Below, in pieces: positions 10,083 to 52,131 of a stretch of 64,000 bases of DNA (position 1 is the first letter of the stretch; each line of letters opens with the position of its first letter). Position numbers and translations under genes: made by a program. Source of the stretch: Azolla caroliniana (Eukaryota > Plantae > Polypodiophyta); NCBI GenBank assembly GCA_043228905.1, contig JBHGNT010000011.1, positions 6,572,001 to 6,636,000 on the forward strand, given 5' to 3'. Under the pieces are notes generated by a model. It saw only the letters and a list, made by a program, of their open reading frames with translations. It made no database searches and was not told where the DNA came from.

Positions 10083-10179
10083 CCCTTCATCCTCCGGTTC
10101 CGTAACAGCCTCCGGACTTGCCGTCATTCATCCCCAGACATCCCATCCGGAGGGACCGAAATCCCAACAAACTCCCCCT

Positions 10180-15766: not shown

Positions 15767-16205
15767 TGTCATGGCAAGACTCGAACCCATGACTTTATGC
15801 TACATGGGTCGAGCTCTTACCATTAGATTATGAATTGTATTTTGTAGGATATTATTTTCATTTATACTTTATCATAGAAAATTGATGTATATTCCAGATC
15901 TCTCTGGAACATTCTAGAAGCTTCAGGATTATTCCTAAAAACACTATAAAAGGAGGCACAAGGCATTGTTTTGAACCAAATTGGTTCAACGCCAGTCTTA
16001 AGCCTCTTAGCCGCTTGTACTTATCTTTTCACATAATATATAGCTGCTGTCATCATCTCTTTCTCTCTCTCATTCTCGCTATCTCTCTCTCCCTCCTCTT
16101 CTCACTTCCTCTCTCGGGAATCTTACGCAGTCCCGTCCTCTTAGTACTAATAGTACTACTGTTCTTAGTACTAATTCCATCTCTGTTTTAGTACTATTCC
16201 TGACA
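15767..16205 (+). repeat. 3' LTR of B
   Basis: Preceded by PPT AAGGGGGAGATAG. Confidence 0.96.
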
Positions 16206-19200: not shown

Positions 19201-21371
19201 ATATGGCATGCGGTGACAGAATGGCTCACCTTGTTGGTGCTACCGGTCGAGCCAGTCCAAACCAAGAAGCGGGGAAGAGCAACGGACGACACCCCGAAAC
19301 CTGCTTCGAAATGGAAACAGTTGTTGGCCTCCAAGGCCACTAAGGGGAAGACGGCCGGCGCAAAGAAGGCGACAAAGGAGCGCCAGCCGGAAGCGGCCGA
19401 CGGATGCAAGTGAGGAGACACTGGCACGGCCCCTGAAGAGCCCAGTTCACCGACCGGTGCAACAGGAAATGGACACCTTGGCGGCAAGAATGAATGTTGG
19501 GACTCAGGCGGAGGAAATGGAGGAAGAACCCACGGAGCACCTCCAGCGGCGGCCGGGAAGAGTACCGCTGAATCAGCCGGGAAGCGTTCGGACCACAGAA
19601 GGAGGGAATGCCCGCAACTCACGCTGAGCATCCCACGCCAAGGGAGGTACCGGAACCGGTTCGGAGGGAACCGGTCACAAAAGTCCCGTCACAATAAGCA
19701 GCACCGGCAAGCCCCGTAATTCAAGAGCCGGATATACAAAGGCCAACTGTTAGGAACAGTACTAAGACAGAGAAGGAATTAGTACTAAAAGAAGTATTAG
19801 TACTAAGAGAGGTGAAGAACTCTCGAGAGAAGGAAAGAGTGAGTGAGAGGGAGGGAGAGAGAGATCGAGAGAGAGAGAGAGAGTGATGATAAGAAAAGAT
19901 ATATATTATGTGAAGAAAATGTACAGTAGCTAGGAGGCTTAAGACTGGCGTTGAACCGATTTGGTTCGAAATAATGCCTTGTGCCTCCTTTTATAGTGTT
20001 CTAAGGAATACTCTTGAAGTTTCTAGAATGTTCTAGAGAAATCTGGAATATACATCAATTTTCTATAATAAAACATAAATTAAAATAATATTTTATGTAT
20101 TACAATGTATAGTCTAATGGTCAAGAGCTCGACCCATGTAGTATAAGGTCATGGGTTCGAGTCTTGCCATATCATGACACTATCCCCCCTTTGAAACGAC
20201 GAGTGTAACGAGTCGTTTTGGATTGAGGACCCGGTTTGTCTGGATATTGACGATGGAAGTCTTCAAGAAGAGCACGAGCATTGGTGACATTCTCTATCGG
20301 TTCCCAAGTACGCTCGCTGGGACTATATCCTAGATAGTAGAGCTTGTTGTGAACAAGCTTGGAATCAAGGATGGCGACAACCTCGTACTCAGGTCCATCT
20401 TCAAGCTCGATCGGGGGTGGAGGCTGTGTAATATATCCTGGGATGGTGCTTTCTTGATAGGGTTCGAGGAGAGAACTATGAAACACCAGATGTATCCGAA
20501 GTTGTGGAGGTAGATCAAGACGAAAAGCGACATCATTAATCTTTCCGATAATACGGAAAGGATCTAATCGTCGATAATCCAACTTCTCGCATGGGCGAGT
20601 AGTCTTGATGTGTCGTCGGAGTAGTCATACCCGATCTCCAATGTTAAAACTAGATGGGAGTCGATGACGATCTGCATAAACCTTGTGTGTTTGTTGAGCT
20701 TGTTGGAGATGACTAGATAAATCCGCTTGTATCTTGCGTAACCTCTCCAAACGATCCTCTGCGCAAGGATTTGTGGACACTTCTGGGGTTTCAAGTACAC
20801 ACCACCGGGGGTGACATCCCGTATAAGCATAAAATGGCGTAACTTTCGTGGATGCGTGGATAGAGTTGTTATAGGCAAATTCGGTGAAGTGGAGAATATC
20901 TGCCCAGTCATCCTGATGATAGCTGAGAAAGTGTTGTCTGCCTGGCCGGACTAGCCTCAACACAGGTGTCTATCCGACACTTCTCCAAAGGGGTGGTAAG
21001 GATTGGATGCTAGGTTACACACGTAAGATGATTACAATTAAGCACAGACGGTAAACAATACGAAGATACAGATAAACACGCAATAATTACTTTTGTATTA
21101 CTTCCGTCAAACCCTTTACAAATCATCGGATCCTTTTATAGGCATCCGACAAGGTTACTATCGGTGCGCTTAGGCAACCGACATCTGAATCGGTCCGGAT
21201 CCGGATCGGTACAACTGTATCGGATCCGTCCCTCCGAATAATAATTCTACTATTATTTACTTCCTATTATCCGATCCAACTCCGCCTTCCCACTTGTCCT
21301 TGCTCTTCTGACCGGCCAACACATGGCACGCCCGTGGGAAAGTGCCTTGCACTTCGAATCCACTCCCGGCC

Positions 21372-22526
21372 TCATTCTTCCTCCAAAATATCGAGCACAC
21401 TCTGCTCGATGGTGTCAAGTGGTGCTTCTTCCTCCTGTTCCTTGCCTGCCTGGTCTCCGACCTCCGGTTGGGTTGGCTGTTCCATAAAAATTTGCTTCTC
21501 CGGCTCTGCTTGATTCTGTGGTGCCGGTGCTTCCTCACCGCTTCGTCCGGGTTCTTCCTGTTCTCCCTCTGTTCCAGGCTCTGTTCTGTTACCAGTGTCG
21601 CTTTCTCCGGTCTCGACTGGTCGGCTCGATACCCCTCCTTCCTCTGCTATGGTGTCTTCCGGTCTCAGCTCTTCTTCTTCTCCGGCATCGGTCTGCTCCT
21701 GCTCTTCTTCTTCTCCTTCGAACGGAAGTTCTTCTTCGGGTATTCCTCATCGGGGTTGTTCGGTGTCGGTTGGTTCAACTTCAGCCGGTCGCTCTCCCTC
21801 ACTAATAGTGATTGGCGTCGTTCTTCCCTTAGCTTCCTGTCGTAACCGGTCCTGCTCGTATCTCTCCAACTCCAACTAAGTTGCGAGCTGCCCGTCATCC
21901 AACCTCTCTACCAACCCTCGGATTTCTTTGAGATGTTCTTCCGCTAAAGCGTAGAAATCCTCCGACAATTCTTCCCGAATGGCGACGATACTTTCTTCAT
22001 CCATCTTGTAGAACTTGTCACCGGTCTTCCTCCGATTCTCGGCATCCGCTCGGAGTGTCTGCAACTCGGCTGCCTGTTGTGACCACTCCTTCCATAGCTT
22101 TTCCGTACTTTCGTTGATGCTTGCCTGAGCTCGGGTACTCCATCCTGACATGATGAGCTTGATCCGGTCAACCCCCGCCTTAGCATGCGCATAAGCTTCT
22201 TGCTTTTCCTTCCTTGCCCGTTTTATAATGTCGGCCATTATCTGATCCTGGGCCTCGTAATCCGCTTTCTGCTTTTCATAGGTACTTTGCAGTTTGCTGA
22301 TTGTGAAGGTCGATTTTTCCTTTTCTTCATTCCTGATCTTGGTCAGATCCAGCTTTTCCCGCCTTAGCGCCTCTAATTCCTTCCTTCTCTCTGTCGCTTG
22401 GGCTATTTCCGCCGAAATTTCGGTTCCCTTGTCACCTCTCTTCTCTGCGTCGTTCGTATTCCGGGGATTCGTCTCGGTCGTACCGGTCCTGGGGGTAGCT
22501 ATCTCTGCGTCTCTCCTCTCGGTCAT
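21372..22526 (-). pseudogene. C-terminal half of the accessory ORF, C unit 1
   Basis: W.EWSQQAAELQTLRADAENR aligns with A WAKWAQNTTELQLLRADVENR; two in-frame stops; ends EQSVLDILEEE*. Confidence 0.85.
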
Positions 22527-23406
22527 AGTTATCGCGTCTTCTATCAGCGTATCTGTTACCGCGTTCGCGTTGGTAGCGGTCGTCTCTCCGGAATCGATCC
22601 TCGTCCGGGTTCTGATTGCGCGGTTCTATGTGTCGAACCGGTGCTGGCTGCCGATTTAACAGGTTATATTCGCATCGGTCCGTTGTATGGGCTCGAGAGT
22701 TGCAGATCATACATTGTGTCCGCAGGGTGCAGTCTACTGTTGAGTGCCCCGAATTTAGGCATGTTGTGCATTGTAAGGCCTGTCGGAACCTCAGGTCTTC
22801 CTCCTTCGGGAGTGCCCGGTGTAACATCCCCATCGACAAGAAGGGGCTAGTCTTGTCCATTTCTAAAACCCGATCAATAACTTGGTCCATTGTGCTGGTT
22901 TGGAAATCAAGGACTCCGCACATTGTTCGAAGTGGCTCTTTCAGCGCGGCCAAAAAGACTGCTTTGGCTTCGTCTTCGGGTGGTGCTCTTGTCAGTTGGC
23001 TGTGCAGGGTCTGAAACCGAATGATGAATTGTGGCACAGTCTCGTTCTCTTCCTGCCGGGTGGTGTAGAACTGCCCGACCAATTCCGTTTGCTCAACTTG
23101 TCTGTGAAAAAGCCTGAGGAATCTGGCCTTCAAGGCATCGAATGTGGCAAAGCTGCCTGGTAAGTGCTTTGCGTGCCATCGGGCCGCCGGTCCTTCTAAG
23201 GTTATGCCGAATTCGGCGACTTTGGATCGTTCGGCTTCGGGCTCCGTCAGTCTTTGGGAGACATGGTTGGCTTCCCATGTTTGGAGGAATGCGTACACGT
23301 GTGCCTCCGCGTCGGGCTCATCCCGGTACTTTGGGTATGGGTACGGCATCGTGTCGTCCAACTGACTCTCCTGCTTTCTGTCCGCTGTTGGCGTCGGTGT
23401 GAGAAC

Positions 23407-23585
23407 CTTTGGTTCCTCCGCGGTTGGTGCCGGTATCCGCTCCTTCAGTTCCTCCGCGGGTGTTGCCGGTGTCCGGTCCTTTGGTTCCTCCGCGGGTGTT
23501 GTCGGTATCCGCTCCTTCGGTTCCTTCGCGGGTGTTGTCGGTATCCGCTCCTTCGGTTCCTTCGCGGGTGTTGTCGGTATCCGGT
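23407..23585 (-). repeat. 36-bp in-frame tandem repeat, five copies (ERIPTTPAKEPK); also at 26694-26872
   Basis: Visible in both the DNA and the translation. Confidence 0.9.
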
Positions 23586-23846
23586 CAGCCTCCCTCGGCG
23601 ATTGCCGGTCACCGAACTCCAAGGTTATTTCTTCCTCTGGCTCCGGTGTTACTGAGTCTTCCGACCCCTCTTCCCCCGGGTCGTTTGGTGTGTCGTGGCT
23701 GCTTTTATACCGGGACGCAACGCTTCTGTCGCTTTCCGACTCCACCTCAAGTGTTGCGAATGCTTCCGAGTCCCCGTCGCCCCCGGCGAGCGTCTGTAGT
23801 ATCGTTTCCGCCTCTTGCAGGCTTGTTATGCTACTGCCTTCGTTGG

Positions 23847-24136
23847 GGATTTGCAGAACCCGGAACTGCAGTGCTTCTTCTGCGACTCTCCGAAGAGTTT
23901 TGGAGAATGACCGATCCCGCCGGATCTCGTCGACGGCTTGCTGCAGGGCTTCCCGTCGTTGCTCGCGTTCGGTGTATCATCTCCCTCGTTCGGATTTGCA
24001 GAACCCGGAACTGCAGTGCTTCTTCTGCGACTCTCCGAAGAGTTTTGGAGAATGACCGATCCCGTCGGATCTCGTCGACGGCTTGCTGCAGTGCTTCCCA
24101 TCGTTGCTCGCGTTCGGTGTATCGTCTCCCTCGTTC
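23847..24136. repeat. 145-bp tandem duplication; also at 27134-27423
   Basis: GGATTTGCAGAACCCGG... begins at 23847 and again at 23992. Confidence 0.9.
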
Positions 24137-24658
24137 GGTGATGTGGTCGTCGTTTGGTCTAGACATCCATCCCCCGGTTGTCCTCTGCACTTTGCAGGAA
24201 TCGTGGTCGCCAAAATAGTGTTGTCTGCCTGGCCGGACTAGTCTCAATACAGGTGTCTATCCGACACTTCTCCAAAGGGGTGGTAAGGATTGGATGCTAG
24301 GTTACACGCGTAAGATGATTACAATTAAGCACAGACGGTAAACAATACGAAGATACAGATAAACACGCAATAATTACTTTTGTATTACTTCCGTCAAACC
24401 CTTTACAAATCATCGGATCCTTTTATAGGCATTCGGCAAGGTTACAATCGGTGCGCTTAGGCAACCGACATCTGAATCGGTCCGGATCCGGATCGGTACA
24501 ACTGTATCGGATCCGTCCCTCCGAATAATAATTCTACTATTATTTACTTCCTATTATCCGATCCAACTCCGCCTTCCCACTTGTCCTTGCTCTTCTGACC
24601 GGCCAACACATGGCACGCCCGTGGGAAAGTGCCTTGCACTTCGAATCCACTCCCGGCC

Positions 24659-25813
24659 TCATTCTTCCTCCAAAATATCGAGCACACTCTGCTCGATGGT
24701 GTCAAGTGGTGCTTCTTCCTCCTGTTCCTTGCCTGCCTGGTCTCCGACCTCCGGTTGGGTTGGCTGTTCCATAAAAATTTGCTTCTCCGGCTCTGCTTGA
24801 TTCTGTGGTGCCGGTGCTTCCTCACCGCTTCGTCCGGGTTCTTCCTGTTCTCCCTCTGTTCCAGGCTCTGTTCTGTTACCAGTGTCGCTTTCTCCGGTCT
24901 CGACTGGTCGGCTCGATACCCCTCCTTCCTCTGCTATGGTGTCTTCCGGTCTCAGCTCTTCTTCTTCTCCGGCATCGGTCTGCTCCTGCTCTTCTTCTTC
25001 TCCTTCGAACGGAAGTTCTTCTTCGGGTATTCCTCATCGGGGTTGTTCGGTGTCGGTTGGTTCAACTTCAGCCGGTCGCTCTCCCTCACTAATAGTGATT
25101 GGCGTCGTTCTTCCCTTAGCTTCCTGTCGTAACCGGTCCTGCTCGTATCTCTCCAACTCCAACTAAGTTGCGAGCTGCCCGTCATCCAACCTCTCTACCA
25201 ACCCTCGGATTTCTTTGAGATGTTCTTCCGCTAAAGCGTAGAAATCCTCCGACAATTCTTCCCGAATGGCGACGATACTTTCTTCATCCATCTTGTAGAA
25301 CTTGTCACCGGTCTTCCTCCGATTCTCGGCATCCGCTCGGAGTGTCTGCAACTCGGCTGCCTGTTGTGACCACTCCTTCCATAGCTTTTCCGTACTTTCG
25401 TTGATGCTTGCCTGAGCTCGGGTACTCCATCCTGACATGATGAGCTTGATCCGGTCAACCCCCGCCTTAGCATGCGCATAAGCTTCTTGCTTTTCCTTCC
25501 TTGCCCGTTTTATAATGTCGGCCATTATCTGATCCTGGGCCTCGTAATCCGCTTTCTGCTTTTCATAGGTACTTTGCAGTTTGCTGATTGTGAAGGTCGA
25601 TTTTTCCTTTTCTTCATTCCTGATCTTGGTCAGATCCAGCTTTTCCCGCCTTAGCGCCTCTAATTCCTTCCTTCTCTCTGTCGCTTGGGCTATTTCCGCC
25701 GAAATTTCGGTTCCCTTGTCACCTCTCTTCTCTGCGTCGTTCGTATTCCGGGGATTCGTCTCGGTCGTACCGGTCCTGGGGGTAGCTATCTCTGCGTCTC
25801 TCCTCTCGGTCAT
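24659..25813 (-). pseudogene. C-terminal half of the accessory ORF, C unit 2
   Basis: Translation identical to unit 1. Confidence 0.85.
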
Positions 25814-27453
25814 AGTTATCGCGTCTTCTATCAGCGTATCTGTTACCGCGTTCGCGTTGGTAGCGGTCGTCTCTCCGGAATCGATCCTCGTCCGGGTTCT
25901 GATTGCGCGGTTCTATGTGTCGAACCGGTGCTGGCTGCCGATTTAACAGGTTATATTCGCATCGGTCCGTTGTATGGGCTCGAGAGTTGCAGATCATACA
26001 TTGTGTCCGCAGGGTGCAGTCTACTGTTGAGTGCCCCGAATTTAGGCATGTTGTGCATTGTAAGGCCTGTCGGAACCTCAGGTCTTCCTCCTTCGGGAGT
26101 GCCCGGTGTAACATCCCCATCGACAAGAAGGGGCTAGTCTTGTCCATTTCTAAAACCCGATCAATAACTTGGTCCATTGTGCTGGTTTGGAAATCAAGGA
26201 CTCCGCACATTGTTCGAAGTGGCTCTTTCAGCGCGGCCAAAAAGACTGCTTTGGCTTCGTCTTCGGGTGGTGCTCTTGTCAGTTGGCTGTGCAGGGTCTG
26301 AAACCGAATGATGAATTGTGGCACAGTCTCGTTCTCTTCCTGCCGGGTGGTGTAGAACTGCCCGACCAATTCCGTTTGCTCAACTTGTCTGTGAAAAAGC
26401 CTGAGGAATCTGGCCTTCAAGGCATCGAATGTGGCAAAGCTGCCTGGTAAGTGCTTTGCGTGCCATCGGGCCGCCGGTCCTTCTAAGGTTATGCCGAATT
26501 CGGCGACTTTGGATCGTTCGGCTTCGGGCTCCGTCAGTCTTTGGGAGACATGGTTGGCTTCCCATGTTTGGAGGAATGCGTACACGTGTGCCTCCGCGTC
26601 GGGCTCATCCCGGTACTTTGGGTATGGGTACGGCATCGTGTCGTCCAACTGACTCTCCTGCTTTCTGTCCGCTGTTGGCGTCGGTGTGAGAACCTTTGGT
26701 TCCTCCGCGGTTGGTGCCGGTATCCGCTCCTTCAGTTCCTCCGCGGGTGTTGCCGGTGTCCGGTCCTTTGGTTCCTCCGCGGGTGTTGTCGGTATCCGCT
26801 CCTTCGGTTCCTTCGCGGGTGTTGTCGGTATCCGCTCCTTCGGTTCCTTCGCGGGTGTTGTCGGTATCCGGTCAGCCTCCCTCGGCGATTGCCGGTCACC
26901 GAACTCCAAGGTTATTTCTTCCTCTGGCTCCGGTGTTACTGAGTCTTCCGACCCCTCTTCCCCCGGGTCGTTTGGTGTGTCGTGGCTGCTTTTATACCGG
27001 GACGCAACGCTTCTGTCGCTTTCCGACTCCACCTCAAGTGTTGCGAATGCTTCCGAGTCCCCGTCGCCCCCGGCGAGCGTCTGTAGTATCGTTTCCGCCT
27101 CTTGCAGGCTTGTTATGCTACTGCCTTCGTTGGGGATTTGCAGAACCCGGAACTGCAGTGCTTCTTCTGCGACTCTCCGAAGAGTTTTGGAGAATGACCG
27201 ATCCCGCCGGATCTCGTCGACGGCTTGCTGCAGGGCTTCCCGTCGTTGCTCGCGTTCGGTGTATCATCTCCCTCGTTCGGATTTGCAGAACCCGGAACTG
27301 CAGTGCTTCTTCTGCGACTCTCCGAAGAGTTTTGGAGAATGACCGATCCCGTCGGATCTCGTCGACGGCTTGCTGCAGTGCTTCCCATCGTTGCTCGCGT
27401 TCGGTGTATCGTCTCCCTCGTTCGGTGATGTGGTCGTCGTTTGGTCTAGACAT
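25719..27453 (-). pseudogene. gag: gag of C unit 2
   Basis: Translation identical to unit 1. Confidence 0.9.
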
Positions 27454-30400
27454 CCATCCCCCGGTTGTCCTCTGCACTTTGCAGGAATCGTGGTCGCCAA
27501 AATAGTGTTGTCTGCCTGGCCGGACTAGTCTCAATACAGGTGTCTATCCGACACTTCTCCAAAGGGGTGGTAAGGATTGGATGCTAGGTTACACGCGTAA
27601 GATGATTACAATTAAGCACAGACGGTAAACAATACGAAGATACAGATAAACACGCAATAATTACTTTTGTATTACTTCCGTCAAACCCTTTACAAATCAT
27701 CGGATCCTTTTATAGGCATTCGGCAAGGTTACAATCGGTGCGCTTAGGCAACCGACATCTGAATCGGTCCGGATCCGGATCAGTACAACTGTACCGGATC
27801 CGTCCCTCCGAATAATAATTCTACTATTATTTACTTCCTATTATCCGATCTGACTCCGCCTTCCCACTTGTCCTTGCTCTTCTGACCGGCCAACAGAAAG
27901 TACCGCAGATACTGCTCCAGCGTTTGATTGGTTCGTTCGGCTTGGCCGTCGGTTTGTGGGTGGTAGCCGGAGGAGAGGTTACATGTGAACTTGAGCATGT
28001 TCAAAAGGTGCTTCCAGAATTTTGACACGAACTGGGGTCCACGGTCGCTGATGATACTATCGGGAAGTCCATGATGCCGACATACTTCACGCATGACAAT
28101 TTCGGCAGTGTCTTCACCGGAGATCTCCTTAGTACATGGCAAGAAATGAGCCATCTTCGTATATCGATCGACCACCGTTAGAATTGCATTGAACCCCTTA
28201 GAGACTGGAAGATCTGTGATGAAGTCTAGAGCAATGGATTGCCACGGCTTGCTTGGATTTGGTAATGGTTCTAATAAACCATATGGATGATGCCTTGGCA
28301 TTTTCGCTCTGCAGCATGTATCACAAGTCCAAACAAAATCCTCGACAAATTGTCGCATACAGGGCCACCAGAATGATCGTTGTACTAAATGTAGTGTTTT
28401 AGTACTACCAAAATGCCCAGCTGTATATGTGTCATGACAGTTTTGTACTACTTGAAGGCGGCAAGAACCATTAAGAACATACAAAAGTTCTTTAAAGAAG
28501 AGTAATCCATCATGGTATTTGAATTGCCGATAGTCCGTACCTGGTGGTTGCGACTGTGAACACGACGCTCAAGAGGGATCAATTTGTGCTAGTATAGCTT
28601 CTAGTATAGCTTGGGCGAACGCATCTATCTTCAAGTCTTCGCGTATGGTATCGATAACGCGGGAATCCATGGGCATGTCAAAGATCTTTGTTGCTTGTAG
28701 TTGTGCCGGTCCCAAGATGACTTGTTTTTGGTTATCGAAAGCTGGCTCGCCGGGACGGGATGCTAGGTACGAATGCCATGATAATGCATCGGCCTTCCCT
28801 TGGTGCTTCCCCGGACGATATGTAATTTTGAAGTCGAAACGCGTGAGGAAGTGGGCCCACCGAGCTTGACGTCGATTCAACACACGAGCATCCTGAAAGT
28901 AGGTAGGGTTCTTGTGGTCACTAAATACGGTGACCGGATGAGAGGATCCCTCCAGAAAATGCCTCCATTGCATAAAAGAATCCACTATTGCCAATAGCTC
29001 CTTATCATGAATTTCGTAGTTGATTTCGGCGGCGTCAAACTTGCGTGAGTGAAAAGCCATAGGATGTAGCTTCTCATCATTCCCCTGTTGTGATAGAATG
29101 CTCACCAATGCAAAATCCGAGCGTCAGCTTCGATAATAAATGATTTTTCTAGATCGACATGAGCTAGAATTGGAGCCTATGTAAATGCCTTTTTAAGACT
29201 CTCGAAAGCCACGTCCGTTTCTTCAGACCAAATGAATGGTTGTCCCTTCCTGGTAAGTTGTGTGAGAGGTAGAACGATCTTTGAGTAATCTTGTATGAAC
29301 TTCTGGTAAAAATTGGCAAAGCCTAGGAAGCATTGCACATCCCACACCGAACGTGGAGTCTGCCATTCTACCACTATTTTGACCTTAGCTGGGTCCATAG
29401 AGATGCCTTCTGACGAAATGATGTAGCCATATCTGGTGCGAAACACGGTCTTCCATTCGTCTCCTGGTCGGATCCGTACGAGGTTATATGCTCCCGTAAG
29501 TCGATCTTCGTGAAGAACCTGGCACCATTGATCCGTTCTAAAAGACTTGAGATAAGGGGAAGAGCATACCTATTCCTGATTGTAACCTTATTTAGGCCAC
29601 GGTAATCTACAACAAGACGAAGCGATCCATCCTTTTTCTTGACGAAGAAAATGGGCGCGCCGGCTGGAGATTTCGAATGCCGGATGAAACCATTTTCCAA
29701 ATTCTCCTCTATATAGGCCCAAAGGACTTCCAGCTCGGTTGGTGACAAATTGTAGATCGGTCCCCATGGCGGCTCTTTTCCCGGTTGTAAATCGATGGGG
29801 CAATCGTATGGTCGATGATGAGGAAGTGTGTTGGCTTGTACTTTATCGAACACATCGGCGTAATGACGATAATTCTTGGGAAGTTGAACGGTGGATCCTT
29901 CTTTAGTGGTGCTGGAGGGGTTTACTGATATTGCAAAGAGGAACATTTCCTCCTTGTGCCCTTCTTTACGCAACTGACGTAGCGAAATGGTTGCCATCTT
30001 CTGAGTTGACCCTTGGGTTTGTCGACACCGGATTTCTCTTGTTCTCCAATCTATGTCTGGGTTATGTAACTCGAACCACGGTAATCCTAAAACTATGGGA
30101 TGTTCTGGGATACTAATAATATTAAATGATACTACACATGCTAAGTTATCTAGGACAATATTAATGGGCTCTGACTCTTCTATGATATTTCCGGAAGCAA
30201 TGGGATGTCCATCAATGACTACTACAGAGGCTGGACACTGGAGTTTTCTTAGGGATATCTTATGAGCTTGAGCAAATTTCTTATCCATAAAGCAAGAGTT
30301 AGCTCCGGAATCTAGAAGTGCTAGGACATGTACTGGAGGGGTACTTTTAGTACTAACTATTACTTGGGCTATGAACACATCACTAACTTGCTTAGAGAGA

Positions 30401-30467
30401 ATGGAACCACTAAAGGGCTGCACAGATCTAGGGCTGTCCAACTAAACGGCTCCTATTTTGGCTGGAC

Positions 30468-31619
30468 TTAGTCGTTTAACTCTTCTTCTAACTGACTAAG
30501 GACATCAAATCTGTTTGCTAGATCTGGGCTATTAGTACTATTAGGACTATCAGATATCCCTACTGAAATAGGCTTGGTTTTAGTACAATTAGAACTAGCG
30601 ACTATTTGGTTTACCTGTCTTCTTGGCCTATGGGGGCAATTTATTGCAATATGTCCTGGTCCACCGCAGTAAAGACATAGTCGATTTGTACGGCGTCGTT
30701 GCTTTTCTTCTTCGGATAATGGCCCTCGACGACATGTAGTATCAATCTCCATCGGAGTTGGAGTATTCACTGGAGGCGCATTATATGACTCCCTCGGAAA
30801 AGGTCTTGCTACAAGTGAGGCGTAGGTGGGCTCTGATCTTGCCCTCGGCATCTGTAGTTGTCGTTCCGAACGTCGCTCAAAGAGGCGGTTTTCACATCTC
30901 ACCGCACGACTGATTGCTTCTGTTAAGGACTTTGGCTCTTCGGGGAAGGTCAAGAGTAAATACTTGACGTCGTTGCGTAAACCATAACGGAATTGCTCCA
31001 TCAACGCTTGATCATCCCAAGGGATATCAACGGCGAGTAGGCGAAAATCTGCAGCATATGCGGAGGCTGGACGATCACCTTGGTGTAATCGTCAAATTTT
31101 GTTGATTGCGGTCCTGATGCTGTCAGTATCTCCGAAACATGCTTTAAACTCACCTAGAAACTCTTCAAAATTGTTGAGTAACGGGGATTCCTTTTCTAAT
31201 AGTGGAGCAAACCATGCCAACGCTGAGCCACTTAACAAAGTGCCTACTAAACCCACTCGTGATGCATCGGTGGGATACCGGGAAGGATGCATTTGAATAA
31301 CTAATTGTATCTGGTTAAGGAACCCTCTAAACTGCGATCGCGTTCCATCGAACTTCATGGGAAGGCCAATCTTGGGTTCTTTATGAATCCCTTGTGTTCC
31401 GGGCCCTTGTTGTTGCATCGCTACGATGGTTGCTTCGAGTTGTTGCACGCGTAACGCAAGTTCCCCATGCTGTTGTTGCGTTTGCTGCTTTTCTAAGGAG
31501 ATTTGCTGAAGATCCCCCAGCAACCGTTGGTTTTCTTGTTCCAAGGCATGGAACTTCTCTTTCAAGCATTGAAATTCCGAGAAAACAGATTGATATTCTT
31601 CAGCGCTAACAGTGCCCAT
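30468..31619 (-). pseudogene. gag: gag of D
   Basis: Collinear with B gag; one in-frame TGA at 31092. Confidence 0.92.
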
Positions 31620-31678
31620 GGGATGAAAGAAAAGAGGAATAAGAGATTAGTAGGAAATGAGAGAGATAGAAGGTAGGA

Positions 31679-31690
31679 AAATCGGTTCAA
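31679..31690 (-). promoter_or_regulatory. Self-priming PBS of D
   Basis: Minus-strand TTGAACCGATTT is complementary to AAATCGGTTCAA in the LTR (31896-31907). Confidence 0.85.
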
Positions 31691-32614
31691 ACTGTCAGGA
31701 ACAGTACTAAGACAGAGAAGGAATTAGTACTAAAAGAAGTATTAGTACTAAGAGAGGTGAAGAACTCTCGAGAGAAGGAAAGAGTGAGTGAGAGGGAGGG
31801 AGAGAGAGATCGAGAGAGAGAGAGAGAGTGATGATAAGAAAAGATATATATTATGTGAAGAAAACGTACAGTAGCTAGGAGGCTTAAGACTGGCGTTGAA
31901 CCGATTTGGTTCGAAATAATGCCTTGTGCCTCCTTTTATAGTGTTCTAAGGAATACTCTTGAAGTTTCTAGAATGTTCTAGAGAAATCTGGAACATACAT
32001 CAATTTTCTATAATAAAACATAAATGAAAATAATATTCTATGTATTACAATGTATAGTCTAATGGTCAAGAGCTTAACCCATGTAGTATAAGGTCATGGG
32101 TTCGAGTCTTGCCATATCATGACACCAACCGCCCCAGCCTGCCAAGAACAAGCAGACAAGGGGCGGCGAGCCGAAACACACTCAGAGCCGGAACGGCAAA
32201 GTGGTCAGCTGGCAGAACCAGAAGCGCAGCTCGACGCAGTAAGGCGGGACCAGCCACCGGTGAGTGAACCCATCAGCCAACTCTCCGTGCAAGCGCAACA
32301 ACACTGCACCGGTAGCCAATGGCTCTGGTGGGTAGGAGAACAAATTGCCGGAGTAGTCAGATGCATAGAGGCGGAGGAAAGAGCGCAAACGGAACGGTTG
32401 CTCGTCACAACCGATGAACTAGAGACGGCCCGGTCAAGGATCTGGTGCCTCGAACAAGACTTGGATCGGATCACAGGAGATATGGCCAAAATGGCCTTAA
32501 CCGCAACGCAGATCCAAGCACCGGTGACTCCGGTTGATGTACAGAGGAATAAGACCCCGGAGACACAAACTGTCCCGGAGAAAGATGCGGCGCAAGCCCA
32601 CGAGAAATATTATA

Positions 32615-33030: not shown

Positions 33031-34296
33031 ATATTATATGGGCATGTTATGGAATTACGAGATGAGCTTGCCGCACAAGAAGCATTACGGAGCGGCGGAA
33101 GAAGAATTAAAAAAGATTGCTGAGAACCTTCGTCGGGCAGAGGAAAACCTACGTAAAGGACATCACGCTTACGACCGGCTGAAGGAGGAAAAAGAGAAAT
33201 TGTTGCAGGAAAAAGACAAGCTACGAGGGATGGCGGAGACGGAAATCGAGAGGCTGAAGGAAGAGCTCCGTCAACAGAAGTACCGGGAGGACAGCATGCG
33301 TCGGTAGATCAACCAGCGGCTGAAGCAAAAGACCGATGATTTCGATCGTCTGCATCGGGACTCAAGCAGCAGGAATGGATGGCCGAGCTCCGGCAAGAAG
33401 TTGATAGGGCCACAACGGCACTCGCCGAAGAACGAGCGGAAAGTTCCAGGCTATTGGAGGAAGCGGCGAATGACCGGATGGAGCTCCACAAACAGAACCA
33501 TGAAGACAAGGAAAGAGCGACAATGGTACTACAGAGTTACAAACGACCTATCAAAATCAATTGTCGCATTATAGGGAGCAGGAGGCGGACACGGTTCGGA
33601 TCATCAAGCAATTGAAGGAAGAGCGACAAGCCGCAGAAAATAAATCATAGATGGGAGCCAAACGGATCTAGTGCATCCTCCGGTCATGGCTCACTAAGAC
33701 CAAAAGCTTGATTGATGACAACTCTGTGTTTTGGTGGGCGAAATGGGCGCAAAATACAACGGAACTCCAATTGCTTAGGGCGGACGTGGAAAACCGGCTA
33801 AAGGAGGGCGACGACTGTTATACGCTGACGTTGGAGGACTTCACCACCATAAGGGATGAGCTGGCCAAAGATTTCACAGCCCTGGCGGATGAACAACTGG
33901 TGCAGGTCCGGCAGCTCATAGCTCAACTGGACGATGATCGGCTGGAGGCTCAAATCCAGTTCGAAAGCTATGAGCGGTCCCGGGTCCGGGAAGAAAAAGC
34001 GAGAAAGGTGGCAACGGTCAACCTTAGTGATGAGGAACTGTTGCCGGTGCAAGGACCAGATGGGGAGTAGGCCGGGGTCAGTCAGCCACAGACAACTCCA
34101 ATGGAGGAACCAACGAAGGAAACGCCGGTGCCAGAGCAACAAACGGAGCCGCAACCCCAAACGGAGAAGCAGCCATAGCCACAAATGGAACAACAGCAGC
34201 AACCATAGTAGCAACAACAGATTCCCGACGAGCCATTGGAAATTTTGGAGCAAAGCATTCTAGACATTTTGGACGAAGCGTAAAAGGGCCGGATAA

Positions 34297-34335
34297 TGGG
34301 TTCGACGTACAAGGTACTGTCCCACGGGCGTGCCA
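34297..34335 (+). promoter_or_regulatory. tRNA 3'-end-like sequence in the PPT position of A (PBS on the opposite strand)
   Basis: TGGGTTCGA-hairpin-GTCCCACGGGCGTGCCA, then TG, then the LTR; conserved in C (21324-21363, 24611-24650), J (52004-52043) and H (36786-36796 plus 42126-42156). Confidence 0.8.
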
Positions 34336-34337
34336 TG

Positions 34338-34804
34338 TGTTACTGGCTGGCAAGAAGGCTTAAGGAGGTCCAAATCGGAGTGTGAAAAGGAATAGTTTAT
34401 TCGGGAACTGTTGTAATTAGTAATATTAATATAGATATTAATATATGAGAAGATGTGGATGGATGGACCGGAATCGGTATGCCGATGCGGATCCGGACCG
34501 ATTCCGTAAAGGTGCCGTGCCGGTTGGCACCGTTTTGTAGTTCGCACCGGAGACCTATATAAAAGGCCAGTTATAATGTAATCAGGAGCGGATAATAAAT
34601 AGAGCTTATTGTCTTAATCTTCCAGTGTTGATTACCGTTCTGTATTCATTGTTCTATCTTACGCGTGTTAATTACGGATTGCTAAGTAACCAATTAAGGT
34701 CTAATTAAGCGTTGTACCATAAGTCATTCTGCCGTACCACCCTTTGGTGAAGTGTCTTAAGTGGACACCCTGTGTTAGGTTGTTGTCTGGCCCTAGGATT
34801 AACA
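34338..34804 (+). repeat. 3' LTR of A (467 bp)
   Basis: Aligns with 792-1253; followed by TSD AACAC. Confidence 0.95.
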
Positions 34805-35196
34805 AACACGGGAGAAAACCACGGGAACAGAGCTTCACTACGTATAGTGGATATACAACACAGAATGTTACAACACTCCTTCGAGTGTATCAGCCACGCA
34901 GGGCTCTTGGCATCTGCTGTTACGCATACAACTATGGCGCCACTCTCACTCACTCTCTATCTCACACCCTCACTCACTACTTCTGTCGCGATGTTTGTCC
35001 TAGATGTATATATTCTGATACATAGTATGAACTATTTACAATTGTAGCCACTGTTACATATCATTACTATTATTATTACTATAACAATAATAATAATCTG
35101 TTTAAACAATCGACTCTCTGTTTTCGACTCTTCCACTGTCAACTATTTCCGAACAGTCGGTTCCTCCCACTAGAGGGACATATTCCCAACACTAAG

Positions 35197-36313: not shown

Positions 36314-36796
36314 TGTTACTGACTAGGTTAACACGGCCTACCCTCAGTCCTTCGGGGTACGGCTCAAGAAGATTGCAGTACAGGGAATGGTGAGCGTAAA
36401 AGGTCTAGACCAATTGCTATGCGTAATCTTTACGCCGCAAGGGTATAGACGAGGGAAGAAGCGTTGTACAGGAAACGGCTATAACTGAGCTCCTTCGTAC
36501 CGTGACGTCGCTCTTTACATGAACATGCTTAATTACCACCTCCACACATACATAAGGTTAGCATAGACACACAGTTCAGAAAGACAACACCACTATATTC
36601 CAAACTTACAAAAATAACTATGCGACCCTTATAGTGTTTCCATGCCCTTTATATATACAGAGCATGGATGGTTACATGCGTTTGTACTTCCTAATGCTTC
36701 CATTATCACGAGGCTACGCTTATCCCCTAGTCCCCCTTTGTTCTTTACATTGTTTCCCACTAGTCCGACTCTGGTAGCCAACACCTGGCATGCCTG

Positions 36797-39700
36797 TGAT
36801 GGAAATAAACGAAACTTTCCAAACTTCACCTCTCGGCCACAACCAAGGAAACACACGAATCGTTGTTGCAGAAAATGGGAAATGCGAAAAATAGAGAGGA
36901 CACACGATTTATCGTGGAAAACCCTGTACGGGAAAAACCACGGGAGTACAAGACTCCGAACCAAAACTATGCACAGAGAAGTATACAATGGCGAGCTGCA
37001 AGGCGACGACCTTGAGTTCGCTGTCCTCGCCATAGGCGGCGGAAATACACAGAGGCGTCGACCTCTTCCTCTCTCTCTCGCGCTCTATCTCTCTCACGGC
37101 TGCTCTCTCTTCACTCCTCTAGAGTGGAAAAACAGAAAAATGAATAGCAACAACAAAACTGTTTGCCCTAAGTCATATTTATACATATATGACTTTGGGG
37201 CTATTTACAACTATAGCCTCAGGGGCCCTTAGCAGACATATTCACGGATATGTCCCTGCATCCGGATCTCTCTCCGGGTACATTCGTCATCCGGCTCCGA
37301 AGTCGGGGTCTTCATCATCCGGTTCCGAAACCGAAACCGGGCTGGTCGGCATTCATCTCTGATATCCGACCATCCCATCCGAAGGGACCATAATCCCAAC
37401 AAACTCCCCCTTCACTTCGGCATGGGATGTCTTTCCAATCCGATCCTCTTCCGGCATACTTCCAGCTTGTCGGGTGTGAGCACCTTGGTCAGCATATCCG
37501 ACCCGTTCTCGTCCGTGTGGATCTTCGTCAGCACGAACTCCTTGTCTTCTATCCTTTCCCGGATCCAGTGATATCTTCGCTGGATGTGCTTCGTCCGGGA
37601 GTGATAGGCCGCGTTCTTCGCAAGGTGGATTGCACTCTGACTGTCGCAGTAGAGTCGGTACTCCTCCTGCCGGATACCGAGCTCTCTAATGAAGTCCTTC
37701 ATCCATATTATTTCTTTGCCGGCTTCAACAGCCGCCATGTACTCCGCCTCCGTGGTTGACAACGCAACCGTCTTCTGCAGCCTCGACTGCCATGAAACAG
37801 CTCCCCCTGCATACGTCATCACATACCCTGATGTGGACCGGCTGGTATCTGCATCAGCCGACATATCCGAATCGGTGAAGCCGTCGAGTTCGGGCTTACC
37901 GGAGCCGAATCGGAGGCACACGTTTGCCGTGCCCTTCAGGTATCGGAGTATCCACTTGGCCGCGTTCCAATGCTCTTTGCCGGGATTGCTCATGTACCGG
38001 CTCACCACTCCGACTGCGTATCCAATGTCCGGTCTTGTACACACCATTGCGTACATCAAGCTTCCGACGGCAGAGGCATATGGCACTTTCATCATGTCCT
38101 CCTTCTCAGCCTTTGTCTTGGGGCTTTGCTTGCTGGACAGCTTGCAGTTTGCCGGGAGGGTCGATCCGACCGGTCTTGCTTCCGACATGTTGAACCGGTG
38201 AAGCACCTTTGTCACGTACTTCTCCTGTGACAGCCACAACTGCTTCTTCTTCCGGTCCCGGATGATATGCATCCCCAGTATTTGCCTCGCCGGACCCAGG
38301 TCCTTCATTGAGAAGGTTCGGTGAAGAGCCTTCTTCAGCATCCGTATCTTGACCTGGTCCCGTCCGACGATCAGCATGTCGTCTATGTACAGGAGGAGTA
38401 TTAGAAAGTCTCCTCCTTCGAACTTCTTCACAAACACGCAGTGGTCGGACTGCGTTTTGAGGTACCCTTCGTCGGTCATGAAGGAGTCGAACTTCCGGTA
38501 CCATTGCCGGGGAGCCTGCTTCAGTCCGTAAAGGCTCTTCTTCAACCGGCATACCAGGTGCTCCTTCCCTTTCTTCTCGAATCCTTCCGGTTGCTGCATG
38601 TAGATCTCTTCTTCGAGGTCACCGTGAAGGAATGCCGTCTTCACGTCCATCTGTTCTACCTCGAGGTCCATGCTTGCCGCTATGCTCAGCACCGTCCGGA
38701 TGGAGGTCATCTTCACTACCGGGGCAAATATCTCGTCGAAGTCGACGCCCTTCTTCTGCTGAAACCCCTTCACCACGATCCTGGCTTTGTATCTCGGGGG
38801 GTTTCCGGCATCTCCCGGTTTCAGCTTGAACACCCACTTGTTTCGAAGTGCCCGCTTTCCTTTCGGCAACTCCACAAGTTCATATGTGTGGTTCTCATGC
38901 AGGGAATCCATCTCGTCCTGCATGGCACTCAACCACCTGCGGCTCTGGGTGTCATGCTTTGCTTCTTCAAAGCTCTCCGGCTCCCCTTCGTCGGTTAGCA
39001 GCACATGCTCTGGTTCCGGAAATCTCCGGGGGGCCCTTCTCTCCCTTAGAGGATATCTCCGTTCCGGAGCTTCGGTAACCGGTTCTTCCGATTCTTCTTC
39101 ATCCGAATCCATTTCGGGATCGGGGCCGGTTCCGGTATCATTTTCATCTTCTTCGGCCGGTTCTGTTTCTTCACCGTCTTCGGCCGGATCCTCGAGTGCT
39201 AACCGGTCCCTTGCCGGTCGGGACTGCTCCTCGTTGAGTTGATCCTCACCGGTCGACTTGGAGCTCTTCATCTTCTTCTCCGACTCCCAGTCGGCGAGTG
39301 TCTTGTCCTCCATGAAGATGATGTCTCGACTCCTGAATATCTTCTTGTCGACCGGGTCCCATACTCGGTAGCCGAACTCATCGTCGCCATAACCGAGGAA
39401 TATGCATGGCCGGGTCTTTGGATCTAGCTTTCCTCTCCGGTCCTTTGCCACATGCACGTATGCGAGACACCCGAACACCTTCAGATGCCGGTAGGATACT
39501 TCCCTACCGGTCCACACTCTCTGCGGCGTGTCTCCGTCCAAAGGTACTGAGGGTGATCTGTTTATCACGTATGTCGCCGTCGACATTGCCTCAGCCCAAA
39601 ACCCCTTGGGTAATTTCGCATGCGCCAGCATACTCCGGACCCTCTCCATTATGGTCCGGTTCATCCTCTCGGCCAGCCCGTTTAGTTCCGGCGTCTTCGG

Positions 39701-42120
39701 CACAGTAAACTCGAGCCGGATTCCCTTCGAGCGACAGTACTCCTGGAACTGCCCCCGGTATTCTCCTCCGTTATCCGCTCGTATCGCTTTCAGCTTCTTG
39801 CCGGATTCCCTTTCCACTCTCGCGTGAAGTTCTTTGAAGACGCACAACACTTGGTCCTTTGTCTTCAACGGTGCCGTCCACAGCTTCCGGCTGTGGTCAT
39901 CAATGAATGTCACGAAGTACTGGGCTCCGCCATGTGACTTCGTTTCTACTTGACACACGTCAGTGTGCACCAGCTCCAATGGTGCGCTACGTCTCGTCGG
40001 TGGCCTTGAGTGGAAGGAGGTCCGGTTTTGCTTACCGGCCAGGCAGTCGGTGCACTTCTCCAGGTGCACATGCTTCACTGGAATAAGGTTGTCTTCTGCA
40101 AGCCTCTTCATCCCCTTCTCACTCATGTGGCACAGTCTTTTGTGCCACAGCTCACCGGCAGTGTCGGCTGCCACATTCAGCTCTTCCGGACATAACCGGG
40201 CATTCATCAGGTACAGTGTGTTGTCTTTCCGGGCCCGAGCCACTATCAGGCTCCCCTTGCTGAACTTCATTACGCCGTTCCGGATGCTACCTGTGTAGCC
40301 TTCATCGTCTAGCCTCCTGGCCGAAATCAGGTTCAATCGAACCTCCGGAACGTGTCGGACATCCTTCAGCAGCATTTTGCATCCGGTCGGGGTTGTCAAC
40401 CACACGTCTCCTATGCCGGCAATCCGGCACGTACCTTCATTTCCCATCCGAACACAGCCATGCTCACCAGCTGTGTAGGATGAGAAGTATCTTCTCTCCG
40501 GGGTCAGGTGGAACGATGCTCCGGAATCGACCACCCAGGTCGTCTCATCGCCGGCAATGTTTAGTTCACCTTCTTCGGTGATGAGCATGATTTCTTCCTC
40601 ACTTGCCGCGAGTGCCGTCGTTCCTTTCCGGTCCTGCCCTCGCCGATCCGAACCTCTCCGGTCCGTGGCTCCCCGGTATGCACCGTTTCTCTCCGGTGAC
40701 TTCTTCGAATCGGTGTCGTCGGCTCCGTTGTCTTTTCGGTAATGCCGACAATTCTTTCGGAAGTGCCCCGGCTTCCCACAGTGGAAGCATGTGGGCCTTC
40801 CTCTTGACTGCGACCGGGTCCCCGACTTCTCCCGTCTTTGCGGACTCCGGTTCCATTGTCTTCCCCGATCCGATTCGGTAAGCAGCGCCTTCGAGTCGGA
40901 GGCCGGTTCTTTGTCTCTCCGACGCGCTTCTTCGTTCAAAATACTTGTCTTTACCGTTTGTAAGGACAAGTTATCTTCGGTGCAGGAGGTGCTGAGAGTC
41001 ACCACCAAGTTCTCCCAGCTTTCCTGCAATGTACACATCAGGATGATGGCTTGCATTGCATCCTCCAACGGGAACTTGATCGCCGCAAGCTGATTCACGA
41101 ATCCCATGAACGTGCTTACGTGTTCCACCATACTCTCGCCATCCCGGTACCTGAGATTCACTATCTTCCTCATCAGGGAGGTCCGGTTCAACGCATTCTT
41201 CCTCTCGTAGAGGCCTGACAGCTTCCGCCACATCTCATATGCGTTGATGTCGTTCGCCACATGTTGTAGAACGCTCACGTCTACGTATTGCCGAATGGTT
41301 GCAACGGCTTTCCGGTTCAGAAGCCTCCATTCCGACTCAAGTACCCCTTTCGGTATTTCCGACCTGTCAATCGGTTCGTACAGGTCCCGAACAATCAGAA
41401 GATCCTCCATCTTGATCTTCCAGTCGGCGTAATTCTGCGCATTCAGCACCATCATCCCCGGCTGCCCGCTGCCGCCGCCTTCCATTTTCTGCAGCAGTTC
41501 GCTCTGATACCAAATTGATGGAAATAAACGAAACTTTCCAAACTTCACCTCTCGGCCACAACCAAGGAAACACACGAATCGTTGTTGCAGAAAATGGGAA
41601 ATGCGAAAAATAGAGAGGACACACGATTTATCGTGGAAAACCCTGTACGGGAAAAACCACGGGAGTACAAGACTCCGAACCAAAACTATGCACAGAGAAG
41701 TATACAATGGCGAGCTGCAAGGCGACGACCTTGAGTTCGCTGTCCTCGCCACAGGCGGCGGAAATACACAGAGGCGTCGACCTCTTCCTCTCTCTCTCGC
41801 GCTCTATCTCTCTCACGGCTGCTCTCTCTTCACTCCTCTAGAGTGGAAAAACAGAAAAATAAATAGCAACAACAAAACTGTTTGCCCTAAGTCATATTTA
41901 TACATATATGACTTTGGGGCTATTTACAACTATAGCCTCAGGGGCCCTTAGCAGACATATTCATGGATATGTCCCTGCATCCGGATCTCTCTCCGGGTAC
42001 ATTCGTCATCCGGCTCCGAAGTCGGGGTCTTCATCATCCGGTTCCGAAACCGAAACCGGGCTGGTCGGCATTCATCTCCGATATCCGACCATTCCATCCG
42101 AAGGGACCGTAATCCCAACA
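36797..42120 (-). mobile_element. Element F: intact Copia, sister of E
   Basis: TSD GCCTG at 36792-36796 and 42121-42125; 605-bp LTRs 36797-37401 and 41516-42120 with about 6 differences; PBS-iMet 41501-41512. Confidence 0.97.
37412..41485 (-). CDS. Copia gag-pol polyprotein of F, 1357 aa
   Basis: Uninterrupted and collinear with E; RT motif YIDD. Confidence 0.96.
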   Translation of the reverse strand: MEGGGSGQPGMMVLNAQNYADWKIKMEDLLIVRDLYEPIDRSEIPKGVLESEWRLLNRKAVATIRQYVDVSVLQHVANDINAYEMWRKLSGLYERKNALNRTSLMRKIVNLRYRDGESMVEHVSTFMGFVNQLAAIKFPLEDAMQAIILMCTLQESWENLVVTLSTSCTEDNLSLQTVKTSILNEEARRRDKEPASDSKALLTESDRGRQWNRSPQRREKSGTRSQSRGRPTCFHCGKPGHFRKNCRHYRKDNGADDTDSKKSPERNGAYRGATDRRGSDRRGQDRKGTTALAASEEEIMLITEEGELNIAGDETTWVVDSGASFHLTPERRYFSSYTAGEHGCVRMGNEGTCRIAGIGDVWLTTPTGCKMLLKDVRHVPEVRLNLISARRLDDEGYTGSIRNGVMKFSKGSLIVARARKDNTLYLMNARLCPEELNVAADTAGELWHKRLCHMSEKGMKRLAEDNLIPVKHVHLEKCTDCLAGKQNRTSFHSRPPTRRSAPLELVHTDVCQVETKSHGGAQYFVTFIDDHSRKLWTAPLKTKDQVLCVFKELHARVERESGKKLKAIRADNGGEYRGQFQEYCRSKGIRLEFTVPKTPELNGLAERMNRTIMERVRSMLAHAKLPKGFWAEAMSTATYVINRSPSVPLDGDTPQRVWTGREVSYRHLKVFGCLAYVHVAKDRRGKLDPKTRPCIFLGYGDDEFGYRVWDPVDKKIFRSRDIIFMEDKTLADWESEKKMKSSKSTGEDQLNEEQSRPARDRLALEDPAEDGEETEPAEEDENDTGTGPDPEMDSDEEESEEPVTEAPERRYPLRERRAPRRFPEPEHVLLTDEGEPESFEEAKHDTQSRRWLSAMQDEMDSLHENHTYELVELPKGKRALRNKWVFKLKPGDAGNPPRYKARIVVKGFQQKKGVDFDEIFAPVVKMTSIRTVLSIAASMDLEVEQMDVKTAFLHGDLEEEIYMQQPEGFEKKGKEHLVCRLKKSLYGLKQAPRQWYRKFDSFMTDEGYLKTQSDHCVFVKKFEGGDFLILLLYIDDMLIVGRDQVKIRMLKKALHRTFSMKDLGPARQILGMHIIRDRKKKQLWLSQEKYVTKVLHRFNMSEARPVGSTLPANCKLSSKQSPKTKAEKEDMMKVPYASAVGSLMYAMVCTRPDIGYAVGVVSRYMSNPGKEHWNAAKWILRYLKGTANVCLRFGSGKPELDGFTDSDMSADADTSRSTSGYVMTYAGGAVSWQSRLQKTVALSTTEAEYMAAVEAGKEIIWMKDFIRELGIRQEEYRLYCDSQSAIHLAKNAAYHSRTKHIQRRYHWIRERIEDKEFVLTKIHTDENGSDMLTKVLTPDKLEVCRKRIGLERHPMPK

Positions 42121-42164
42121 GCCTGTGGGATAGTACCATCGCACGTTGGACCCCACCTGCTTGA

Positions 42165-51522: not shown

Positions 51523-52131
51523 TGTTGTCACCGGGCTGGACAAGCCGCTAACACAAGGTTTCCCTTTAGAACACTTCACCAAAGGGGTGGTACGGTAAGG
51601 AATGTGCAGACTGTGATACAAGACCAATCCTTCCTGGTCACTATCTGAAATGATTAACTTGATACCCGCGTATGATAATCACATTAAAGGCAGAATGGTA
51701 TTAACAAGATACATAATATGTAAAGACACAACGCTTCTCTATTAATTATCCATCATCAATTTCATCATCTCTGGATCCTTTTATAGGTATCCGGTTGTGC
51801 TACAAACTGGTGCCAACTGGCAACCGGCTACGAATTGGTCCACATTCGGATTGGCATACTGATTCCGGGTCCGTCTGTCCGATCTTATAATTATCATAAC
51901 AATCTGATAATTATCATAATGATCTTATAATTATCATAATTTATTTAATTACAACTCCCATAACCGACTCCCCTTTCATACTCTAGCCTAGCCGGCCAAC
52001 ACATGGCACGCCCGTGGGACAATACATTCTACGTCGAACCCATGGTTAGCCCCTTCATTCATCCTCCAAAATGTCCAGAATGCTCTAGTCCAGGGGCTCC
52101 AACGGTTCATCGGGTAGTTGCTCCATCGGCT

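Follow-up and report, generated by a model that had tools for sequence, protein, structure and literature searches.

[quoted passage not shown] Other kinds of start are known from different classes of element: the plus strand of hepadnaviruses, a non-PPT case in a reverse-transcribing element, is primed by a translocated capped RNA oligomer, and tRNA-like CCA ends are replication start sites in the Mauriceville retroplasmid and in plant viral RNAs. To our knowledge none of these systems uses a host tRNA annealed to minus-strand DNA. The minus-strand primers of plant elements, most of which have a PPT, have been catalogued as full tRNA, half tRNA and self-priming by Neumann et al. (2019, PMC6317226), where plus-strand priming from an RNase H-resistant PPT is regarded as a feature shared by retroviruses and the majority of LTR retrotransposons. 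Half-tRNA primers and the self-priming of Tf1, Tcn1 and TAR (PMC6317226) are, like the case presented here, lineage-specific replacements of a canonical primer, but of the minus strand only. Second, 3′ tRNA-binding sites have been described in Ty3 and Drosophila Gypsy, where they pair with inner parts of the tRNA (anticodon, T stems) and bridge the 5′- and 3′-ends of the genome; Gypsy can make cDNA without its site (Gabus et al. 2006, PMC1635307).

The locus described here lies in a 64,000-nt stretch of Azolla caroliniana DNA (the window), in which several retrotransposons, including elements A and C, carry a tRNA-like block before the 3′ LTR. Like a PPT, this block adjoins U3 with approximately 2 nt that would later be trimmed, acts in cis and is kept by non-autonomous elements. 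Unlike a PPT it is not purine-rich, and it copies the 3′-end of a mature tRNA including CCA, so that a host RNA, in place of a primer cut from the element's own RNA, could anneal to the minus strand. With the 5′ primer-binding site (PBS) for tRNA (PMC6317226) it has in common at least 11 nt of complementarity to the CCA end of a mature Arg tRNA and a position adjoining an LTR end, the 2-nt spacer being present at both sites in the relatives L126 and L127; however, both its strand and its LTR are the opposite ones, its template would be DNA and not RNA, and in A, C, L126 and L127 its tRNA-Arg isoacceptor differs from that of the element's own PBS. The 3′ sites of Ty3 and Gypsy (PMC1635307) are likewise tRNA-related sequences near the 3′-end of a Ty3/gypsy genome, but on the genomic RNA they form the complement of the primer tRNA, whereas the present block, read on the coding strand, is in tRNA sense, copies the 3′ terminus of the tRNA and occupies the position of the PPT.

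Self-comparison reveals that the window is a nest of LTR retrotransposons (Table 1). The LTRs of element A are direct repeats of the form TGTT...AACA, 94% identical to each other, with a 5-bp target duplication on both sides, as is characteristic of Ty3/gypsy elements. Its Pfam domains are found on the plus strand in the order gag (1309-2241), reverse transcriptase (RT; 4072-4845), RNase H (16211-16858) and integrase (16994-17755); they lie on the tRNA-sense strand, which agrees with the orientation assumed in a preliminary description of this DNA. The tandem array C is nested inside insertion E2; its LTRs are 97-99.7% and its units 99.7% identical, and its copies are recent insertions. C is a non-autonomous derivative with gag and a coiled-coil 3′ ORF; the N-terminal part of its gag carries 36-nt tandem repeats (23309-23658), and a 145-nt duplication is present at 23847-24138. 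Contigs from four public DNA runs, representing three organisms, cover the C unit region 20930-24700 at very high summed depth with 80-100% likeness, from which it appears that the C family is abundant in related species too.

Table 1. Coordinates of the elements, tRNA-like blocks and primer-binding sites in the window
Feature	Position	Strand	Remarks
Element A	792-34804	+	self-comparison
A 5′ LTR	792-1253	+	preceded by target duplication AACAC (787-791)
A 5′ PBS, TGGCGACCACG	1261-1271	+	7 nt past LTR; complementary to tRNA-Arg(UCG)-type 3′-end
Insertion E1 in A	5032-16206		
Insertion E2 in A	19745-32134		
Array C, LTR-internal-LTR-internal-LTR	20930-27895	-	unit of 3287 bp; single target duplication CTTTC
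C unit 1, LTR after block	20930-21321	-	
C unit 1, full tRNA-like block and spacer	21322-21362	-	16-mer at 21324-21339; adjoins LTR 20930-21321
C unit 1, 5′ PBS TGGCGACCACG	24202-24212	-	
C unit 2, LTR after block	24217-24608	-	
C unit 2, same block as unit 1, and spacer	24609-24649	-	16-mer at 24611-24626; adjoins LTR 24217-24608
C, second PBS copy TGGCGACCACG	27489-27499	-	
A block, TGGGTTCGA	34297-34305	+	tRNA-Arg(UCU) positions 50-58 (T-stem 5′ strand and T loop to A58); aligned with tRNA-Arg(TCT) genes
A block, mini-hairpin of 14 nt, GTAC AAG GTAC	34306-34319	+	in place of tRNA nt 59 (G59); covariation
A block, TCCCACGGGCGTGCCA	34320-34335	+	tRNA positions 60-65 and 67-76 with CCA, without nt 66; 11-nt exact match anchored at tRNA 3′-end; candidate plus-strand primer site
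A spacer TG	34336-34337	+	from CCA to LTR
A 3′ LTR, TGTTAC...TTAACA	34338-34804	+	followed by target duplication AACAC (34805-34809)
H block, remainder CACAGGCATGCCA (36798-36786), and spacer GG	36784-36798	-	LTR start 36783
Insertion F	36797-42120		splits block of H; own target duplication
H block, upstream part ending TCCCACAGGC (42130-42121)	42121-42160	-	cut by F
J 3′ LTR	about 51520-52001	-	
J block and spacer	52002-52042	-	16-mer at 52004-52019; adjoins 3′ LTR

The 16-mer TCCCACGGGCGTGCCA is present in four exact copies in the window, in A, in both C units (C1 and C2) and in J, each on the coding strand of its own element; a search of the window allowing up to three mismatches has a chance expectation of 0.52 matches, and four were reached in none of 100 shuffles. 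Every copy is followed by TG and then by the LTR start TGTT, the block ending exactly 2 nt before the 3′ LTR, where it had originally been reported. The variant seen in H shows two CpG-to-CpA changes, and its halves flank insertion F with its target duplication, again in accordance with the first reading. Alignment of A, C1, C2 and J reveals an invariant run, TCCCACGGGCGTGCCATGTGTT, between variable flanks. In A, C and J the block, the spacer and the first four LTR bases make up 22 consecutive invariant columns, whereas the LTRs can be aligned only in patches, at 71-81% identity; the near-invariance of the block beside diverged LTRs is thereby borne out. Because old copies (H, L126 and L127) show CpG decay inside the block, its constancy in the other copies reflects selection at transposition.

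A polypurine tract before the 3′ LTR, usual in Ty3/gypsy elements, is missing from the block-bearing elements, as the preliminary description had stated. Within the last 25 nt before the LTR, at most 3 purines follow one another in A, C and J, the young copies of the C array included; over all members of the clade described below the longest run is 3-5, compared with 8-17 in most outgroups and other LTR elements checked (5 in L131). Other LTR elements of the window possess AAGGGGGAGATAG-type purine tracts at the PPT position; the block is approximately 50% purine. Since the U3 border is fixed by the target duplications (AACAC for A, CTTTC for C), plus-strand DNA must start within 1-2 bases of the CCA/NG junction.

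Two further readings of the site were excluded. It cannot be the ordinary PBS of elements on the opposite strand, for it is the tRNA-sense strand that encodes gag, RT, RNase H and integrase as well as the conserved terminus of the 3′ ORF (SILDILEEE-stop type). A displaced PPT approximately 45 nt upstream (AAGGG after the stop codon) was rejected because the 5′ LTR begins at TGTT right after the target duplication, and these 45 nt are therefore not duplicated.

The tRNA was sought in one scan of metagenome contigs with a T-arm plus acceptor pattern, which returned 120 stretches in which ARAGORN called 80 tRNAs. Most of these, from metagenome contigs and not from this genome, are tRNA-Arg(TCT) genes of 73 nt without encoded CCA, the 3′-end being GTGGGTTCGAGTCCCACYGGGCGTG; the tRNA-Arg(UCU) terminus previously cited is thus a real one. 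A tRNA-Arg(TCT) gene without encoded CCA (L094) is also present in the ENA study which contains close relatives of the family. The part of the block ahead of the hairpin matches tRNA positions 49-58 (50-58 in A). When the block of A is aligned with this tRNA (Table 1), the segment TCCCAC corresponds to positions 60-65 and GGGCGTGCCA to positions 67-76; nt 66 is missing, and this is the one base by which the site had been found too short. GGGCGTGCCA includes the post-transcriptional CCA, which is kept in 10 of 10 independent block copies. The alignment indicates that the block goes back to the last third of mature tRNA-Arg(UCU), at its 3′ side. Counted from the tRNA 3′-end, A, C and J match exactly over 11 nt, the length of their accepted 5′ PBS; to the CCA end, the complement of the block thus presents either these 11 perfectly matched nt or, if one base is bulged out, 17 of 18 nt. 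The predicted energy of the 18-mer duplex is -33 to -37 kcal/mol; the corresponding values are -21 for the PBS of 11 nt and -5 to -7 where outgroups have their PPT. Read from the other strand, the succession of CCA, 2 nt and LTR mirrors the LTR-NN-PBS arrangement, and the PBS-like geometry initially proposed is thus present.

The insert that replaces G59 is a hairpin of 13-14 nt with the stems GTAC/GTAC, GTGC/GCAC, GGAC/GTCC and GGGC/GCCT. Two stem pairs are changed on both sides in three of six sequences, 89.6% of cells are paired, and the covariation score was reached by one of 500 shuffles; with six related sequences, this is supportive of a hairpin, short of conclusive. Two of the pairs are G-U, a weak hint that the plus (RNA) strand would fold, favouring a role of the RNA in cis. 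A complete tRNA-like fold, whether cloverleaf or acceptor/T minihelix, was rejected: ARAGORN finds no tRNA in the window, Rfam returns no match to a tRNA-like structure up to E = 10, and the folding energy of the block is no better than that of shuffles. The acceptor 5′ strand CACGCCC is absent upstream of the block.

At their 5′-ends A and C do keep the PBS TGGCGACCACG attributed to them, at 6-7 nt from the LTR end and not at 2. It is the complement of a tRNA-Arg(UCG)-type 3′-end, the reference being a human tRNA as printed in a bioRxiv paper; among the fetched loci no tRNA gene matched the 5′ PBS types, nor any plant tRNA TGGCGACCACG. The spacer between the LTR and the TGG of the PBS is T-rich, with 7 nt in A (CAGTTTT, 1254-1260), 6 nt in C (CTATTT, 24213-24218) and 4 nt in L001 (CTTT, L001:1548-1551); L126 and L127 show the common length of 2 nt (CT). 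It follows from the longer spacers that minus-strand DNA of A, C and L001 would start several bases outside U5. The 5′ PBS differs across the clade, where at least four tRNA-Arg-like types are found, while the 3′ block stays tRNA-Arg(UCU)-like, and this switching at one end with fixity at the other points to constraint by an outside (host) molecule.

Relatives were collected from public metagenome and ENA assemblies by gag and pol searches. Searching with gag yielded nothing longer than short metagenome contigs, and among the relatives found by integrase the first four are outgroups. The gag of L001 is 46% identical to that of C, and its block, with one G-to-A change, is followed by TG and TGTTGG; the 5′ PBS is TGGCACGCCTGGGG. 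L128 possesses the block GCCCAGCCGGGCGTGCCA followed by GG and TGTTGA, with nt 66 present, no deletion and a 12-nt exact match. L126 has the same block with one CpG decay, lacks the T-stem 5′ strand and carries the 5′ PBS TGGCGATCCTGCTGGGGA 2 nt past the LTR. In L127 the block CTCCACCAGGTGTGCCA, with two CpG decays, precedes AG and TGTTGG, and the 5′ PBS TGGCGACTCCGCTGGGGA is again 2 nt past the LTR. Loss of nt 66 is found in the subclade of A, C, J, H and L001, where the upstream TCCCAC is still invariant.

In a quick IQ-TREE analysis of RT-RNase H, element A of the window, L001, L126/L128, L127 and L129 fall in a 12-row clade with an SH-aLRT of 99. The evidence consists of three deep branches, L126 and L128 belonging to one family, and the branches are approximately one substitution per site apart. 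Every clade member with a readable 3′ junction shows a block ending in CCA, followed by N, G and TGTT. Purine tracts are found in the sisters, namely L130 (AAAAAAAGGGAGAAGAA) and the Riccia elements L123 (GAAAAGGGGGAAA, with the PBS TGGCGACCATG) and L122, and a G5 run in the fern-like L131. The presence of the block throughout the clade and of PPTs in its sisters indicates that the PPT was replaced in the ancestry of an old clade, whose members share this derived trait. A scan of IMG/VR for the block plus LTR start gave 35 matches, all in contigs without tRNA-like sequence upstream, which were taken as chance.

The elements form a deep clade of non-chromoviral Ty3/gypsy retrotransposons, the nearest named relatives of which are liverwort and fern elements. 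The precomputed Pfam lists of the clade polyproteins contain only RVT_1, RT_RNaseH, RT_RNaseH_2, Integrase_H2C2 and rve, as do the pieces of A. The archaeal-type RNase H of Tat/Ogre/Retand is in none of these lists, and the affiliation with the Tat group that had been put forward is not upheld. Clade proteins gave no match to Athila ORF-1 (PF03078), a Brassica Athila-type protein falls in the outgroup of the RT-RNase H tree, and no chromodomain is among the Pfam matches of the clade integrase proteins.

Two small non-coding relatives, L003 and L049 (both on reverse strands), carry the full A-type block with hairpin, then 2 nt, the LTR (TGTTGTCC...AACACA), ATT and a PBS. Since these mini-elements retain little beyond LTRs, PBS and block, the block is a replication signal needed in cis. 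In L049 the PBS is complementary to 33 nt of tRNA-Arg(UCU), in L003 to its full 76 nt; such sites indicate that mature tRNA-Arg(UCU) serves as a primer within the clade.

How, then, would plus-strand DNA be started? We give about even odds to the proposal that the block is a cis-acting start signal which replaces the PPT, and which is bound by the 3′-end of tRNA-Arg(UCU), or by a fragment of it, priming in trans. After synthesis of the minus-strand cDNA and digestion of its RNA template by RNase H, the block's complement would be exposed and could anneal to the CCA end of the host tRNA or to its 18-nt 3′ fragment. Extension by RT from A76 would yield plus-strand DNA starting with the 2-nt spacer followed by U3, and these two nucleotides would be the ones trimmed by integrase. 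The layout would mirror LTR-NN-PBS, in which the 5′ PBS sets the minus-strand start beside U5. Whereas the anatomy, the tRNA identity, the conservation, the phylogenetic distribution and the requirement in cis are seen in the sequences, annealing, extension and primer removal are steps that we infer; a tRNA that primes on DNA would have to anneal after clearance by RNase H and to be removed precisely. To the wider proposition that the whole clade primes both cDNA strands with host tRNAs (tRNA-Arg at the 5′ PBS on RNA, tRNA-Arg(UCU) or its 3′ CCA fragment at the mirrored site on minus-strand DNA) we assign slightly less than an even chance. The deletion of nt 66 that is kept in A, C, J, H and L001, beside a TCCCAC that is still invariant, speaks against priming in trans: if complementarity were all that counted, an uninterrupted 18-mer should be accepted or even favoured.

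That same deletion fits somewhat better with a primer in cis, in which the element's own tRNA-like RNA survives RNase H and primes the plus strand, the likeness to tRNA being due to ancestry or to an RT/RNase H adapted to tRNA-Arg ends. The loss of nt 66 and the inserted hairpin both make the block less like the tRNA and are conserved nonetheless, the G-U pairs favour folding of the plus strand, and the position and 2-nt spacer are those of PPT primers. A primer of this kind would, however, be free to drift from the tRNA, yet the three deep branches keep the terminal GGGCGTGCCA or CpG-decayed forms of it and CCA is kept in all copies; moreover, a block that is half purine is without the purine-rich composition which defines known RNase H-resistant primers. 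We regard this explanation as rather unlikely, though it is the main rival of priming in trans.

Improbable, in our estimation, is another role at the RNA level, such as pairing with the PBS to circularize the genome, packaging, or the binding of RT or a host tRNA-binding protein, with the plus strand started otherwise at the same border. L003 and L049, and to some extent L001, have a 5′ PBS that could pair with the block, T-stem pairs are kept in the A subclade, and the tRNA-related 3′ sites of Ty3 and Drosophila Gypsy bridge the genome ends (PMC1635307); PBS pairing or protein binding is therefore a possible role in the mini-elements. As a general property of the clade, block/PBS pairing was rejected, since A, C, L126 and L127 have a PBS without complementarity to their block. 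Nor does L126 have the T-stem 5′ strand, and ARAGORN and Rfam detect no tRNA-like fold, while some primer would still be needed at the exact border, where nothing else is conserved. A neutral fossil of tRNA read-through or recombination, devoid of function, is very improbable: such read-through fossils do occur in the host group (L098, L003), but the block is invariant beside LTRs alike only in patches, is kept across branches approximately one substitution per site apart and in non-coding mini-elements, and decays in old copies only.

To return to the proposal of a tRNA primer in trans, a literature search which included the exact sequences, most subscription journals being outside its coverage, yielded no report of a block in tRNA sense, ending in CCA, where the PPT should be. 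Neither motif is present in the text and supplements of PMC6317226, and no such site is described in PMC11963269 or PMC9289625. An old, high-copy clade that carries a copy of a host tRNA end in place of the PPT represents a natural experiment on the evolution of primer choice. If the tRNA were the primer, this would be the first retroelement known to us in which host RNA primes both strands, and transposition would be coupled to the availability of a further tRNA and its 3′ fragments and to their modification. It would also account for a possible failure of structure-based LTR finders to recognize elements of the clade or to orient them correctly. If instead the element's own RNA is the primer, an RNase H-resistant primer need not be purine-rich.

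A coiled-coil accessory ORF is present in A (33038-34290), in C (21376-22526, minus strand) and in L001 (L001:3-980). It stops approximately 40 nt upstream of the block with a conserved acidic tail (SILDILDEA, SVLDILEEE, SILDILEDE, SILDIFDDA). A Pfam search gave no match to it; judging by the synonymous differences found between families, it is probably translated.

The LTRs of E1 and E2 (5032-5060 and 15767-15795; 20150-20189, minus strand) begin with TGTCATGGCAAGACTCGAACCCATGAC, the complement of which includes the T-arm-like GGGTTCGAGTC. Both elements have a normal PPT; their 5′ LTR is followed by GTTTGAACC, which is not a TGG-type PBS.

Arrays and mini-elements of the ENA study ERZ10343xx (L098:1-2055; L003:1187-1265; L049:200-238) have an internal region which consists of, or starts with, the complete or a 33-nt complement of tRNA-Arg(UCU) with its CCA, at 3 nt from the LTR. 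The L098 unit consists entirely of LTR, ATT, the full tRNA complement, CAGG and LTR. The far end of this tRNA complement (CCACGGGCGC, then CA, GG and TGTTG) mimics the 3′ block through the self-complementarity of the acceptor stem. At a contig end from run X3 GGGTAACACAAT is joined to TGGCACGCC, which shows that this type is present in the organism of that run.
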